A stretch of DNA of 64,000 nt from Phaeosaccion multiseriatum (lineage: Eukaryota; Protista; Ochrophyta, other classes), in NCBI GenBank assembly GCA_965112735.1, contig OZ218952.1:2666001-2730000 (forward strand), read 5' to 3'. Under the pieces are notes generated by a model. The model saw nothing but the letters and a program-made list of their open reading frames with translations. It had not been told where the DNA came from and ran no database searches. A program made the translations under genes and the position numbers. Shown here piece by piece: positions 8,891 through 15,171 of the stretch. Positions within the stretch are counted from its first letter, which is position 1; every line of letters begins with the position of its first letter.

Positions 8891-9661
8891 TTATGCGCAG
8901 TCCGCCGAGTAGCTGGTGAGGCCCGATGATGGGCAGAAGACGATGCTCTCGGGGGTGAAGTCGGGGTAGGCAACCATGCCTGCCGCGGCGCCCTCGCACG
9001 TCATCCAGCACCCTCGGCACACCTGGCCCATGCCGAGGTAGTTGCACAGCAGACCGGCGTCTGCCGACATGCAGCTCTCGTCGTAGAACACGCTCTTGTC
9101 GAAGCCCTCGAGCAGCATGAGGGCGGTCTCAGCGTCCAGCGAGCACTCCGTGCTGTCAGCGTCTCCGGCGGGCTCCTCCTCTGAGATGATGAGGTCGCAC
9201 GACTGCCACTCGCCCTTTCCGCAGAATCTGCAGTCGATGCCCGCGCCGTGGGCGTTGCATCCGAGTCCGCCGTACTCAGAGCATGTGGGGTCGTTGTAGC
9301 AAGGTGCCTGGTCGGGGGGAGGGGAGGGAGGAGGAAGGAGAGGGAGAGAAGGATAGAAAAGAGTGAGCGGATCGTTGCTTTCGGGGGTGGCGATAAAACG
9401 GTCTCTTGCGAAAGCGGAGAGCGTAGAAGTAAATGGGTCAACGGCGATGCTGACAATGGAGGAAGGACAGTCACTCACCGCTTCGCTGCACTGGTCGGAG
9501 CAGAAGGGGGTGCCGGCAACGACGGGGTTCACGGAGCTGGGAGAAGGTGCGGAGCTGCTCATGGGGGCCATGGTGGGTGCTGCCGACTCCATCTGCGCAG
9601 ACACCGCTCCGGCGGAGAGCAGCGCAGTGGCAATGGAGGCGATGAAAGACATGGGGGCCAT
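8891..9661 (-). CDS. Secreted cysteine-rich protein, copy 3 (2 exons: 9661-9479, 9307-8891; ~199 aa)
   Basis: Signal peptide MAPMSFIASIATALLSAGAVSA-Q. Exon 2 is almost identical to copy 2. The 171-nt intron is stop-free, which produces the 256-aa ORF in the track. Confidence 0.9.
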   Translation of the reverse strand: MAPMSFIASIATALLSAGAVSAQMESAAPTMAPMSSSAPSPSSVNPVVAGTPFCSDQCSEAVSDCPSSIVSIAVDPFTSTLSAFARDRFIATPESNDPLTLFYPSLPLLPPPSPPPDQAPCYNDPTCSEYGGLGCNAHGAGIDCRFCGKGEWQSCDLIISEEEPAGDADSTECSLDAETALMLLEGFDKSVFYDESCMSADAGLLCNYLGMGQVCRGCWMTCEGAAAGMVAYPDFTPESIVFCPSSGLTSYSADCA

Positions 9662-10102: not shown

Positions 10103-13100
10103 TCAGTCAGCTGGTCCGGCTCTACCTCTGCCCTGCTTGCCCTCCATCCGTCGGTCGTGGTGCTGCTGCATGGCCTCCAGGAGACCCTCCACCGTGGCCC
10201 GGGACTCCATTCGAACCGCGCGGGTCTGCGGGGCGGCAGGAGCGGGGGCAGTGACCGTTGGTGATACAGGACCAGGAGCAGAAGAAGCAGGAGAAGGTGG
10301 TGATGCAGGAGCGGAGGGACAGAACAGCACACGTCTCACGTCAAAGTTGAGGGGTGGGGGCAAGAAAGAGTAGCGAGTAGATGAAATTCGGCATCCTCAC
10401 CTGCTTCAGCGCCCTCTTCGCCAAGACGTTTGCCCCTGTGCAGAAGCAGTAGATGCGGCAGTTGCCCGCCGCCGCAGCGATCTCCACGTCCTTGGGACTC
10501 ACCACCCCCACTCCGGACCCAACCACGTGAAGACGTGCCTCCGAGTCCTCTATGGCATCCAAGATGGCCAGGAGAGAGTTTGCGCTACCTGCCTTGATAA
10601 TGACCGGGGTCACCTCGTCAAAGGCCTCCTCTTCGTCCCTCTTCATGCGCTCCTCATCCACCAGTTGGTAGTAGTCGTCGTCGTCGTCGTCGAAGCTGTC
10701 ACCGTCCTGCTCCTCCTCCTCTTCGTCGTCGTCCCTATTTCTGTCGGCCTGCTGCTGCTGTGTCATCAACTGCTGTTGCTGCTCCTGCTCCTCTTGCTGT
10801 TGTTGTTGTTGTTGTTGTTGTTGTTGCTGCTGGTGCTGGAGGGTGGCGAAATCACCTTGCTCGGTGGTCCACCCGCTGTTGTCCCACAGCTCATTCCCCG
10901 CCCCCGCCCCCTCCCCCGCCTCCTCTTCCTCATCATCATCATCACCGTACTCATCATCACCACCACCGTTATAATCGCCCGCATTCCTCCCAGGCTCGTG
11001 CACATCTTCATAGTTGGGCAGCAGTCTCTCCATCGCCCTCACATCAGCGATCATCTCTGCATATCTCTGCTCCGTCGCAAAGAGTGCCTCCCCCACGGGC
11101 AAGTCTACATGTGCATTCTTCTCTACAAACGTCACCCACACCGCCTCCCCCGGCCCGGCCCTCTCTAGGTCTCTACTCTTGTCGTCGCTCTTCATCAAGC
11201 GGATTCTATAGTGCAGGCATGTGGAGGGCGGGGGGGGGGGGGACAAGGGGAAGGAGAAGTTTTGCTTCTTGTCAGAGCGAAGCGGGACCAGGAAGGAAGA
11301 GCGCGCGTGGGCGCGTGAGACGGGGTGCAATTTCGGAGAGAGAGACTGTGCGCCAAACGCCCTCTCGCTGTTAGTTCATTCATTCATTCAGTCGTTCTTT
11401 CTGTCTTTCTTTTCTTTTCATTCACCCACTCGTTCGCTCCCGTTCCCTTCTTCCTCCCCTCATCGCACCTACATACCTTCCCCACTTGTAGCCCGAAACG
11501 AAGAAGTGCCCCACCTCGATGAAACCGTCATGCACCAGCAGAAGGAACTGCCGCCCGTTCTTGGGGTGGATGGTCACGTCCAGCACAGTGGCGAGGGGGG
11601 CATTCCAAGGCGACCGAGACTTCAAGGTTACGAGCGAAGAGGACGATGACGCAGCACGCTTCTTCCCATCCTTCTTGTCCTTCTTCCCTTGGTTGGTCAA
11701 CATCTGGAGAGACTGCGGGTAAAGGACGGACGGACGGAGGGAGCGAGGAAGAGAGGATAGCTTTATAACTAGGTTTTGCTACAAAGAGAGGAAAGGCAGG
11801 CCAGCAGGCCGGCAGGCAGGTAGGCATGCAGACAGGCAGGCAGGCAGGCAGGCAGGCCGACAGAGCAAGGCGCAAGGTTTTGGATTTGGGGGGGGTGAGC
11901 GTAGAAAAAGCGAGCAGCTGGACTGAACTACCGATCTATTGAGCTACATTCGCATGCAAAAGGCCATCCTACACATCCAGAAGCGTACCTCCCAATCCTG
12001 CAGAAAGGTGTCCGTTTCAGAAAGTGTCGTGGCTGTGCCGCCCTCTCCCGAGGCAACAACAAGAGAAGAAGCCGCGGAGGCACTTCCTCTCTCCCCCTCT
12101 CCCTCCTCTCCCCCCTCCCTCTCTGCGGCCGCGTGGGTCAACTCCGCTGCGAGTACTCGCTTCAGTTCGTCCAGGCCCTCTCCGGTGGCGGCGGAGATGG
12201 GCACAAGAGGGGCCTTGTCCAAGGAGATGAAGGTCCTGAGCTCCTTCTCGAGATCCTTCAGAGCGTTCTTGCGCTGCTCCGGCGCGGAGGGAAGAAGGTC
12301 AATCTTGTTGAGAGCCACCACCATGGGCAGGCCTACGACACAGAGAGCAGGGTAGAGGTGTGTGGGTACGGCAGGGTAGAGTTGTATGGGCAGGGCAGGG
12401 CAGAGGTATATGGGTCGGGCAGGGTAGAGGTATATGGGTCAGGCAGGGTAGAGGTGTATGGGTAGGGAGGGTAGGGGTGTATGGGTAGGGCAGGGTAGAG
12501 ATGTATCGGCAGGGTAGGGTACAGGTGTATGGGTAGGGCAGGGTAGAGGTGTATGGGTAGGGCAGGTGAGAGGTGTATGGGCAAGGCAGGTGAGAGGTGT
12601 AGGGCAGGGCATGCTCGTGGGTCGGGGAGGTAAAAAATAACCGCACGCGCCTGCGCACACAGACACACATCCACCCACCCACCCACCCACCCACACACAC
12701 ACACAAACACAAACACACACACACCACACGCGCGCATATCTGGGCTTCTGTTGCCGTCTGTCCTGTGCTCACCGAGGGTCTCAGCGTTTCCGATGGACTC
12801 CTCCGTCTGTGCACAGATACCGTCAGGGGCCGAGATGACGAGGAGCACTGCACTCGCGGCACCGGCCCCGTTGTTGCGCATACGGTAGAAGATCTCCTGT
12901 GATAGAGAAGAGCAGTTGGTGATACAGAGCAGAGAAGAGCAGGCAGAGCAGCGCAGAGAGACGCCCGCGGGAGGGAAGAACAAAGCAGAGCGCACTGGGT
13001 TAGCAGCAGCCGCAGCAGCCGTAGTCGCAGTAGCAGTAGTCGTCGTCGTAGTGGTAGTAGTAGAGTAGTAGTAGTAGTAGTAGGAGTAGGAGGAGTAGGA

Positions 13101-13111
13101 GTAGGAGTAGC

Positions 13112-13182
<71 letters not shown>

Positions 13183-15171
13183 CAGCAGCAGCAGCAGCAA
13201 ACACCAACAGCAGCAGCAATAGTCGCAGTAACAGCAGCCGCAGTTGGTTCTACAGCAACAACACTAGCCTTGCCCAGCCGTACCTGTCCTGGCGTGTCCA
13301 GCACGGTGACCTCTCTCACGCCTATGTCAGCACCCGTACCACCACCACGCCTACTACCACCCTCGTCGTCGCCATCTGCCCCCCGCAGCTGGACGGCCCT
13401 GGCCCGAATCTCCTGTGTGATGCCCTCGTCTTCCCCTGCCACAAGCGCGCTACCCTCTCCCAGCAGGGCGTCGAGTAGCGTGGTCTTGCCGTGGTTAAAG
13501 TGGCCGAGGAGAGCCACCACGGGCTTCGGCTTGGTCTGGGGGTTTGGGTTGGACCTGTGAGTACAAGAAGGAGGGCGTGGGTAGGTACAGGTGGGTGGGT
13601 GGTTAGGTGGGGTGGGCTGGTGGGTGGGGTGGGTCACGCGCACAAGAATTGAGGCACACCGGACGTACACGTTTGCAGCGTTGTCGCGTCGACGTTGCTC
13701 GTGCCTGTCCTTCAACGGACTTGGCTCCACGGTGAGGCGCCCCACTGTCACTCTGAGCCCCCGCTCGGCTTGCTTCACATCGGCCCAGGGTAACATGATG
13801 TCTTTGACGGCTCTGTCGTTGTGAGTGAGTGAGTGAGTGAGTAAGGAAGGAAGGGAGTGAGGGAGTGAGTCAGTCATTCAGCGAGTGAGTGCCTGGGTGC
13901 ATGCATGGGGGTGAGTGAGTGAGGAAGGGAGGGAGTCGGTCAGTGAATAAGTGAGTGTGAGTGAGTGAGTGAGTGAGTGAGTGCGTGGTGTGATAGTCTT
14001 TGAATACAGACGCGGCCCGGTCAGCCGCGGGGGGGGGGGTGGGAGATACCAACAGAGGGGGCAGAGAGGGGCGAAGAGAGGAGAGGTATCACGGAGAGAA
14101 GAGAGGGTAGGCGGGGGCAACAGTCAAGGCATAGAGTGTTGCCGTCCATGCGTGCATGACTGACTGGTTGACTCGCTGACAAGACCCTGTGTAAATGACA
14201 TGAGGCCATCCATCCGCTGCCATCCATCCATCCGCTGCCATAATCCATCCATCCATCCATCCATCCACCCATTCATAAGGACTGCTTGACTCACTGGAAG
14301 GAGTAGAGTTTCCCGTCCTGCATGGGGATGAAGTACCTCTTGTTCCTCCTCCAGCCTCGGAGGGCCTGCAGCACCTACCAGGAGGGGGAAGGGGAGAGAG
14401 GAAGAGAAAGAGAGCAAAGGGGGACATACATTGATGGACGTGGAAGGCCATTAATCAGAGTGTGAGAAGGTCTCCTCTGTCCCTCTGGCTCTCTCTCTCT
14501 CTCCCTCTCCCTCTCTCTCTCTAGGCTCTTCCCCTCTCGCTCTCCTCCCTCTCTACCCTTCCCGTTACAAAGCGTGGCGCCATTCTCCTCTCTCCCTTTC
14601 TCACCTTCTTCGCAGGCACAGCCGCCATCTTGGCCAGCGTTCTCAGCCGAATGAAAGGCGGTACCTTCAGCACCATGCCCTGCCGCTTCACTCCCCCCCT
14701 CTTGCTCTTGCCGGACTTCCTTCTGCTCTTCTTAGAAGTGGGCTTTCCGCTGTCAGACGCAGGGAGGGCCCCCCCCAGTGGACTCGCCGCCACTGCGCTA
14801 GTATCAGCTGCTGCAGCTGCTGCTGTTGCATGCACCATACGTGCCTGCCGTGGAAAGCGCTCGAAACAGCAGAGCCGAGCCCCCTGGCCAATGCCCCTTC
14901 CCCCATGCCAGTAAAGCGGGCTGCTCTCACCATTGAGATGGCGCCGGCCATGGCCCGGCGTCGTAGACCAAGGTGGCCGTCCGTCTCCTCCGCTTCGGCC
15001 TCCTTCCTCCCCCCTCCTGAGTTCTTCTGCTGCTTCTCTCCCCTCGCTGAATACCCTGACGGGAAGCAAGGACGTCCATCGCAGGTGTGGTAGCTTTCCC
15101 AGCTGCTGATGCCTCTGCCTTACACATCTCCTTGCCTGTAGTCCGCCAGACGAAGTCACTGTTCGAAGCAT
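10103..15171 (-). CDS. Atypical translation initiation factor IF2-like GTPase, probably mitochondrial (9 exons: 15171-14605, 14374-14295, 13812-13660, 13554-13284, 12896-12773, 12332-11989, 11703-11477, 11205-10401, 10225-10103; ~897 aa)
   Basis: Arg-rich N-terminus; IF2_N-like VPPFIRLRTLAKMAAVPAKKVLQAL; G1 PVVALLGHFNHGKTTLLDAL; G2 EGITQEIRA; G3 LDTPGQE; G4 NKID; G5 ISAATGEG; domain II ATVLDV..LLVHDGFIEVGHFFVSG; domain III PVIIKAGSANSL..VVGSGVGVVSPKDVEIA. The exon lengths sum to a multiple of 3. Confidence 0.88.
12347..12610. repeat. 24-bp minisatellite (~11 units, GCAGGGTAGAGGTGTATGGGTAGG) in IF2-like intron
   Basis: Tandem units visible directly; lies just upstream of the acceptor at 12333. 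Confidence 0.9.
13020..13200. repeat. (TAG)n/(CAG)n microsatellite in IF2-like intron
   Basis: Long run of agtagtagt; source of the poly-Y, poly-T and poly-L ORFs. Confidence 0.95.

Follow-up and report, generated by a model that had tools for sequence, protein, structure and literature searches.

Within a 64,000-nucleotide stretch of the genome of the ochrophyte alga Phaeosaccion multiseriatum (GCA_965112735.1, contig OZ218952.1, positions 2,666,001–2,730,000; here called the window, in whose numbering all coordinates are given), a gene on the minus strand at 15171..10103 encodes a member of the translation initiation factor 2 (IF2) family, with the G domain motifs G1–G5, domain II and domain III (PF11987) all present. 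The features that mark a functional IF2 equivalog (TIGR00487) are lacking: domain IV, or C2, is absent, and the catalytic His and the P-loop Val-Asp pair are replaced. Its IF2 core, which ends at the helix after domain III, and its switch II motif of the F[FY]RMR type place the protein in a clade of C2-less relatives. We propose, with a probability of about one half, that it is a mitochondrial, tRNA-independent and GTP-dependent factor in mitoribosome maturation or subunit joining.

An IF2 core that ends before domain IV

Sequence reading, six-frame translation and junction mapping resolved the gene into nine exons that join in frame across eight introns, all of them GT..AG (8/8), to give a coding sequence of 2694 nt, or 897 codons plus a TGA at 10105-10103. 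Exon 1 (14605..15171, minus strand like all that follow) begins with the ATG at 15171 and encodes a basic, acid-poor leader and then a low-complexity stretch; its 3′ part (14664-14605) starts the conserved N-terminal IF2_N-like domain, VPPFIRLRTLAKMAAVPAKK. Into this domain exon 2 (14295..14374) places a family-specific beta-hairpin, VLQALRGWRRNKRYFIPMQDGKLYSF, an assignment based in part on the structural model of an orthologue described below, and exon 3 (13669..13812) completes the domain and links it to the G domain. Exon 4 (13284..13554) covers G1 to G3, the first half of the G domain. Its P-loop reads GHFNHGKT (13482..13505), with Phe and Asn where translational GTPases (trGTPases) carry the Val of the hydrophobic gate and the Asp that is the second catalytic residue; switch I, GITQ (13413..13424), keeps the Mg-binding Thr and the gate Ile; and switch II, DTPGQ (13284..13298), has Gln at the place of the catalytic His. 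The codon for this Gln, CAG, is the last of exon 4, with the exon boundary CAG/GT at 13284/13283.

Exon 5 (12773..12896) opens with EIFYRMR, the family signature in the switch II helix, and continues into the next strand. G4 (NKID, 12309-12298), G5 (SAA, 12195-12187) and the end of the G domain follow in exon 6 (11989..12332), together with a Glu/Gly-rich tail whose Glu/Gly-rich part is coded by a GA-rich stretch at 12086-12124. Exon 7 (11477..11712) codes for a basic, Ser-rich linker and begins the domain II beta-barrel, whose second half lies in exon 8 (10401..11205). There a connecting helix and an acidic/poly-Gln insert (11012-10614) come between domain II and domain III (10613-10401). Domain III has its last strand in exon 9 (10103..10225), where the linker helix TVEGLLEAMQQ (10195-10163) and a short tail lead to the stop, without domain IV. 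The reading frame thus ends 40 codons into exon 9, just past the helix that in IF2 leads to domain IV, and the next open reading frame starts at 9661, 441 bp beyond the stop.

Domain scans and searches, run exon by exon with each exon alone, agree with this model. Pfam matched GTP_EFTU on exons 4, 5 and 6 and IF-2 domain III on exon 8 (33.6 bits against a cut-off of 27), and the best named NCBIfam matches on exons 4 and 5 include bacterial IF-2, TIGR00487, at 27–35 bits for each single exon scanned, where the equivalog cut-off of 424 bits applies to a whole protein. In blastp, the alignments of successive exons to orthologues run on colinearly from one exon to the next. On the Hapterophycus protein P0001, exon 4 reaches residue 304, a Gln, exon 5 takes in 305-345 and exon 6 continues from 347, the residue absent between exons 5 and 6 being the split codon; on the Choristocarpus protein P0120, the match of exon 7 runs to residue 458 and that of exon 8 begins with 460. 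Exons 1–3 match the conserved N-terminal block of the family, and exons 7 and 8 align to domain II of the orthologues and of canonical IF2. When four canonical IF2s and five family members were compared with the 64-kb window by tblastn, all coding exons from exon 3 on were matched and no domain IV-like coding was found anywhere in the window. The possibility of a missed C2 exon was rejected, as the canonical IF2s returned nothing of the kind from the whole window and the orthologues stop at the same place.

Further support comes from relatives. For the closest, P0007, with 53–73% identity in exons 4–6, the three runs ERR13334382-84 each yielded a contig (Logan contigs) about 3.1 kb long and free of introns. 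In all three the ATG is preceded by a stop in its own frame, G3 has CAG, and the roughly 400 nt beyond the TGA contain stops in every frame; the contigs are transcript-like and look as if they came from RNA-seq of an organism resembling a brown alga. P0005, a more distant member on a 2.2-kb contig, has the same CAG at G3 and the same stop without C2. On such comparative grounds the gene is real and conserved, neither a pseudogene nor an artefact of the model, because the same motifs and the same end are conserved in relatives; the pseudogene candidate was rejected on that conservation. The first-pass annotation, made from the letters alone, therefore stands in its structural part. It had read nine exons in frame, G1 as GHFNHGKT (now at 13505-13482) and DTPGQ|E across a CAG/GT junction at 13284, which junction mapping and the colinearity of exons 4 and 5 with P0001 bear out; and it had placed the end of the frame about 40 residues after domain III and some 440 bp before the next gene, with no C2 domain to come.

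The C2-less family and its catalytic centre

Exon 4 was first used in a word-based search, with scoring inside the stop-free frame of 514 codons that exons 3–5 share (13877-12336); the search returned proteins of three brown algae, of Tribonema minus and of further sources, all with both GHFNHGKT and DTPGQ. A profile built from the first family members scored a group at 1166–231 bits, sharply apart from canonical IF2 (<=211 bits), and an exhaustive profile search of 1.84 billion representatives yielded further members. The conservation of DTPGQ and of the altered P-loop in relatives, a check that the first-pass annotation had proposed, was confirmed in this way: DTPGQ followed by [DE]x[F]([YF])RMR occurs in 46 database proteins, far more than chance would give. 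Members of this Gln clade share GH[FYCQ][ND]HGKT and DTPGQ[DE]xF[YF]RMR and end at the post-domain-III helix. Those with a named source are the brown algae Scytosiphon, Hapterophycus, Pylaiella, two Ectocarpus and Choristocarpus and, beyond the brown algae, Tribonema (Xanthophyceae) and Pedospumella, a colourless chrysophyte; many environmental sequences are also among the orthologues.

All full-length family members end at the helix after domain III. A profile of the C-terminal 125 residues of ten canonical IF2s found C2 in all canonical bacterial and eukaryotic controls (E values from 1e-15 to 1e-37), yet gave no match in any C2-less family member. An AlphaFold model of the compact orthologue P0008, computed from a 13-sequence alignment (mean predicted local distance difference test score 82.6, predicted template modelling score 0.78), shows an N-terminal alpha/beta domain with the inserted hairpin, the G domain, the beta-barrel of domain II, and domain III with its trailing helix, and contains no fourth domain. 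Its best Foldseek matches are bacterial IF2 and the human, porcine and trypanosomal mitochondrial IF2s; the best solved relative by sequence is mammalian mtIF2 (1e-69), and the nearest ESM Atlas clusters are mitochondrial IF2s. No solved structure of a C2-less IF2 paralogue was among the matches, the top ones being canonical IF2, mtIF2 or eIF5B throughout. The protein thus shares with mitochondrial IF2 (mIF2, or MTIF2) and bacterial IF2 the fold, the domain order (IF2_N-like N-terminal domain, G, II, III) and, for GTP binding, intact G1, G2, G4 and G5 motifs, but differs from them in having no domain IV, in the changes of His to Gln and of P-loop Val-Asp to Phe-Asn, in an extra hairpin in the N-terminal domain and in large low-complexity inserts. 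Because domain IV and the catalytic His are missing, the annotation 'translation initiation factor IF-2, mitochondrial', given to its relatives in Balamuthia and Albugo, should not be applied to it.

The next-best matches form a second group that carries GHVDHGKT and DTPGHFHFFRMR and likewise lacks C2, and in which the oomycetes Peronosclerospora and Albugo are the members with a named source. In this clade of oomycetes and relatives (P0015, P0123-P0129, P0124) the switch II sequence DTPGHFHFFRMR is strictly kept, with Phe-His after the catalytic His in place of Glu/Ala-Ala, and its proteins, lacking domain IV, are annotated simply as IF2. Further C2-less relatives of the His type occur in Balamuthia (annotated as mitochondrial IF-2), Dracoamoeba and the foraminiferan Bolivina. 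In a maximum-likelihood tree of 78 rows and 432 columns (LG+C20, quick search, archaeal outgroup), the Gln clade and the oomycete clade each have 99% support and their sister relation 88%, the C2-bearing eukaryotic mIF2s and bacteria form one clade (98%), and 36/36 C2-less rows lie on one side of a branch with 78% support. The position of the C2-less proteins outside bacteria and canonical mIF2 would suggest a pre-mitochondrial origin; this is a probable long-branch effect and was not taken as evidence. As far as the sequences tell, loss of C2 is older than the change from His to Gln, because oomycete, amoebozoan and foraminiferan relatives without C2 keep the His, and it is the ochrophyte branch only that appears to have added Gln together with a changed P-loop.

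What these positions do is known best from EF-Tu. Its switch II residue His84, described as 'conserved in all trGTPases', is oriented towards GTP by the A2662 phosphate of the sarcin-ricin loop, and Val20 and Ile61 form a 'hydrophobic gate' that shields this catalytic residue; Asp21 is a further catalytic residue, its replacement by Ala slowing the reaction about 1000-fold, and the H84Q substitution impairs ribosome-stimulated hydrolysis without abolishing activity (PMC5084732). The P-loop Asp is, in addition, a ligand of the monovalent cation that is typical of trGTPases (PMC4342817, PMC4509514). The equivalents of Val20, Asp21 and His84 in the IF2-like protein are Phe, Asn and Gln. Among the proteins fetched in the analysis, the gate position is neither Val nor Ile in 44/44 with Gln (Phe in 27, Tyr in 8, Cys in 5, Gln in 2, Ala in 1 and Arg in 1), and is Val or Ile in 328/330 with His, the other two having a different residue; the counts are over related sequences and so represent few independent events. 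Judged from these sequences, the pairing of an altered gate with Gln has held since the ochrophyte classes diverged. Asn at the position of the P-loop Asp is common in the Gln clade, not universal, and is shared by some His-type members. With the Mg-binding Thr of GITQ, the NKxD motif and the P-loop Lys and Thr retained, the protein should still bind GTP.

Two known systems resemble this centre. Yeast Ski7, a paralogue of Hbs1, has Thr, Asn and Ser at the Val, Asp and His positions, co-purifies with GTP, which it binds stably, and has been proposed to be a GTP-binding pseudo-trGTPase (PMC4509514). Like the IF2-like protein, it is a trGTPase paralogue that is non-canonical at the same three active-site positions (Thr/Asn/Ser and Phe/Asn/Gln, respectively, for the consensus Val/Asp/His), but it belongs to the EF1/Hbs1 family, acts in the cytosol and has the exosome as its partner, so that the resemblance is convergence and not kinship. 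The other likeness is to the DxxGQ motif of Ras-type GTPases, since DTPGQE reads like a Ras or Rab switch II motif, in which the Gln positions the attacking water. The rest of the protein, however, is a trGTPase, a class whose activator is the sarcin-ricin loop phosphate acting on His, and we know of no arginine-finger partner for it. Of the 'Ras-like catalytic Gln' that had been suggested on first reading, the Gln at G3 therefore remains; Ras is an analogy only, and the pseudo-trGTPase Ski7 is the closer precedent.

Introns and neighbouring genes

Introns 3 (13668-13555, 114 nt) and 4 (13283-12897, 387 nt) are multiples of three in length and contain no in-frame stop. Retention of either would preserve the frame, and retention of intron 4, which is mostly a (TAC)n-type microsatellite, would add poly-Tyr/Thr to switch II; that the two introns are open is probably a by-product of their low complexity. 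Intron 5 contains about 12 tandem copies of a unit of roughly 25–30 nt, …CCCTACCCATACACCTCTACCCTGC… (12620-12350), and intron 2 has runs of (CACT)n and (GGAT)n (14000-13820). Such microsatellite-rich introns look typical of this genome.

Downstream of the gene, the open reading frame at 9661-8891 on the minus strand encodes a Cys-rich protein of 256 residues that looks secreted; it starts like a signal peptide, MAPMSFIASIATALLSAGAVSAQ, and includes a Pro-rich stretch. On the other side lies the C-terminal exon of a RING-finger protein (17051-16716, minus strand; CNVCQDRRKNCIITKCFHMFCRECV…CPACGRGF), preceded by coiled-coil open reading frames at 18110-17598 and 18764-18330; these exons may represent an E3 ligase of the BRE1/RNF20 type, which they resemble.

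Cellular location and proposed role

The N-terminus of the protein, MLRTVTSSGGLQARRCVRQRHQQLGKLPHLRW..., has 9 Lys or Arg and 1 Asp or Glu in its first 45 residues, and basic, acid-poor N-termini are a feature of composition in all family members. None of them has a signal-peptide-like hydrophobic core (maximum 12-residue Kyte-Doolittle mean <=1.9), and plastid import in ochrophytes needs a signal peptide. The protein is nucleus-encoded and, to judge by these N-termini, most likely mitochondrion-targeted.

Second mitochondrial IF2 copies have been recorded in protists before. A long-branched 'mIF2-2' is named in alveolates and kinetoplastids in Atkinson et al. 2012 (PMC3401457), and the 2015 census (PMC4342817) lists two mIF2 entries each for Emiliania, Bigelowiella, Toxoplasma, Babesia and Perkinsus, two mitochondrion-predicted ones on different scaffolds for Phytophthora ramorum, and, for Ectocarpus siliculosus, two mIF2 entries predicted mitochondrial in the best reliability class (CBJ25673.1 and CBJ28782.1; supplementary file 6) beside the 'hIF2' CBJ29052.1, predicted C/S (Atkinson 2015). 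These copies resemble the family described here in being long-branched second mitochondrial IF2s of protists; mIF2-2, however, is described only for alveolates and kinetoplastids, the comparison is by description only, and no mIF2-2 was recognised among the named matches. The parts of PMC3401457 and PMC4342817 that we consulted make no mention of a loss of domain IV or a change of His to Gln, DTPGQ and GHFNHGKT appear in no relevant paper of the literature searched nor in the portions seen of the 2015 census supplements, and the searchable literature does not mention a missing domain IV, the Gln or the P-loop change in such IF2 copies. The existence of second copies has thus been on record since 2012 and 2015; what appears to be new is the loss of C2 together with the catalytic changes.

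That the C2-less protein accompanies a canonical factor is seen directly in the amoeba Balamuthia mandrillaris, which has a C2-bearing IF2 (P0150, 768 aa) and a C2-less one (P0262, 806 aa). In this pair it is the C2-less P0262 that is annotated 'IF-2, mitochondrial', and the names that the databases give the two may mislead or be swapped. A profile of protist C2-bearing mIF2s found a canonical stramenopile mIF2 in the bicosoecid Cafeteria (P0275), the only named stramenopile, and no canonical ochrophyte mIF2 was seen among its matches, which were swamped by alphaproteobacterial IF2. For the family, the paralogue reading is well supported. The first-pass annotation had gone on to suggest a neofunctionalised organellar IF2 paralogue, and much of this is retained, namely a conserved paralogue under selection, with a mitochondrial-type leader and with relatives that have a canonical copy, seen directly in Balamuthia and by way of the census in Ectocarpus and Phytophthora; what does not hold is that the loss of C2 is special to this gene.

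In IF2, the contacts with the small subunit and with the GTPase centre of the large one are made by domains G, II and III, and the fMet-CCA end of the initiator tRNA is gripped solely by domain IV. By the same contacts the IF2-like protein would dock on the mitoribosomal small subunit and the GTPase centre through its G, II and III domains; without domain IV it could not deliver tRNA, but it could occupy the IF2 site and sense or promote subunit joining. Its remodelled catalytic centre may lengthen the GTP-bound state or pass the trigger to something other than the sarcin-ricin loop, so that GTP would be hydrolysed slowly or by a different trigger. In late maturation of the small subunit, or in trial joining of the subunits, the protein might then be a placeholder or checkpoint that depends on GTP, and its enlarged, strongly conserved N-terminal domain fits a role in small-subunit maturation.

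Roles of this kind without tRNA are known for canonical factors. eIF5B drives formation of a trial 80S-like complex in 40S maturation. In Trypanosoma brucei, mt-IF-2 is a fixed component of late assembly intermediates of the mitochondrial small subunit, in which its N-terminal domain probes the decoding centre with no tRNA present (PMC8784144), and a human small-subunit assembly intermediate contains mtIF2 with RBFA and METTL15 (PDB 9igt, as given in its title). The likeness is that a canonical mt-IF-2 works on small-subunit assembly intermediates without tRNA; the difference is that those factors carry domain IV and the His and do this as a second job, whereas here a separate gene would be dedicated to it.

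Several points weigh against this proposal. The mitochondrial assignment draws on composition and on published predictions for Ectocarpus entries that are not matched by accession, and the status of the gene as a paralogue in this genome is extrapolated from relatives, the analysis having covered the 64-kb window, in which no canonical mIF2 was seen. The sequencing runs of this alga amount to four holders from one study, all DNA-like, with no RNA run among them; the four carry 88–95% of the words of the gene, introns included, and so look like DNA. By analogy with EF-Tu H84Q, which keeps some activity, Gln would be no proof of slow hydrolysis, and some members of the Gln clade keep the P-loop Asp. 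The branch that groups the C2-less proteins has only 78% support in a tree that contains long branches, and we found no experiment on any family member in the literature.

The protein could instead be a working, and perhaps the only, mitochondrial initiation factor of ochrophytes, joining the subunits without the grip of domain IV on the tRNA, which would be selected otherwise, by another factor or by the ribosome. This account, which we judge unlikely, draws on the mitochondrial IF2s as the best relatives in sequence and features, on the retention of the G, II and III domains that bind both subunits, on the census, in which Thalassiosira has only one mIF2 entry and Phaeodactylum none (PMC4342817), and on the profile search, in which the nearest canonical mIF2 to ochrophytes was that of Cafeteria. 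It is opposed by the two mitochondrion-predicted entries of Ectocarpus besides hIF2, by the canonical copy that Balamuthia keeps beside the C2-less one, and by reviews that call an mIF2 with a tRNA-binding domain universal; moreover, the replacement of three catalytic-centre residues at once is a better fit to a specialised role.

Somewhat less probable again is a GTP-locked pseudo-GTPase of the Ski7 kind, a GTP-stabilised scaffold or adaptor that would, for example, recruit RNA-decay or other machinery to stalled or idle mitoribosomes without a catalytic cycle. The substitutions fall at exactly the three positions changed in Ski7, and the large, poorly conserved acidic and Gln-rich inserts could act as docking regions. 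Gln is nevertheless catalytically competent in most other GTPase classes, the activity retained by EF-Tu H84Q points the same way (PMC5084732), and the His-type C2-less sister clades keep the canonical catalytic centre, so that the ancestral C2-less protein probably cycled.

A plastid factor, the 'hIF2' of haptophytes and heterokonts in the Atkinson census, is a very improbable identity. The named Gln members are ochrophytes and overlap the hIF2 carriers Ectocarpus, diatoms, Aureococcus and Emiliania, but a plastid role and hIF2 identity are unlikely because a signal-peptide-like core is missing from every member, all N-termini being of mitochondrial type; in addition, the census gives hIF2 entries as predicted S or C and both Ectocarpus mIF2 entries as M (PMC4342817), and the sister clade is found in oomycetes, which have no plastid. 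A decaying gene or faulty model, with a C2 exon missed or the Gln created by a wrong splice, has in its favour the absence of transcript evidence from this alga, whose sequencing-run holders are all DNA-like, and the in-frame openness of introns 3 and 4, and is close to refuted by the recurrence of the same motifs and the same end in >40 proteins from independent genomes and assemblies, by the colinearity of the model with orthologues, by the agreeing intron-free contigs of a close relative and by the lack of C2-like coding in the window.

Returning to the proposed tRNA-independent mitochondrial factor, its history can be sketched tentatively: an ancient family of mitochondrial IF2 paralogues, present in stramenopiles, Amoebozoa and Rhizaria, may have shed C2 and become independent of tRNA, after which ochrophytes would have rebuilt the catalytic centre from Val/Asp/His to aromatic/Asn/Gln. 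If this is true, the ochrophyte protein would be the first natural member of the IF2 family in which GTP hydrolysis has ceased to depend on the sarcin-ricin loop and His as its trigger. Current thinking on how the ribosome triggers GTP hydrolysis centres on the switch II His, and domain IV is what makes IF2 an initiator-tRNA factor; the family thus offers a natural experiment in what an IF2 core does minus tRNA binding, and in whether Gln can serve in the active site of a trGTPase. Behind the 'duplicate mIF2' entries of genome censuses there probably lies a protein of distinct structure, one that suggests that mitochondrial ribosome biogenesis or initiation has an unstudied component across a large share of eukaryotes, namely brown algae, other ochrophytes, oomycetes and amoebae.

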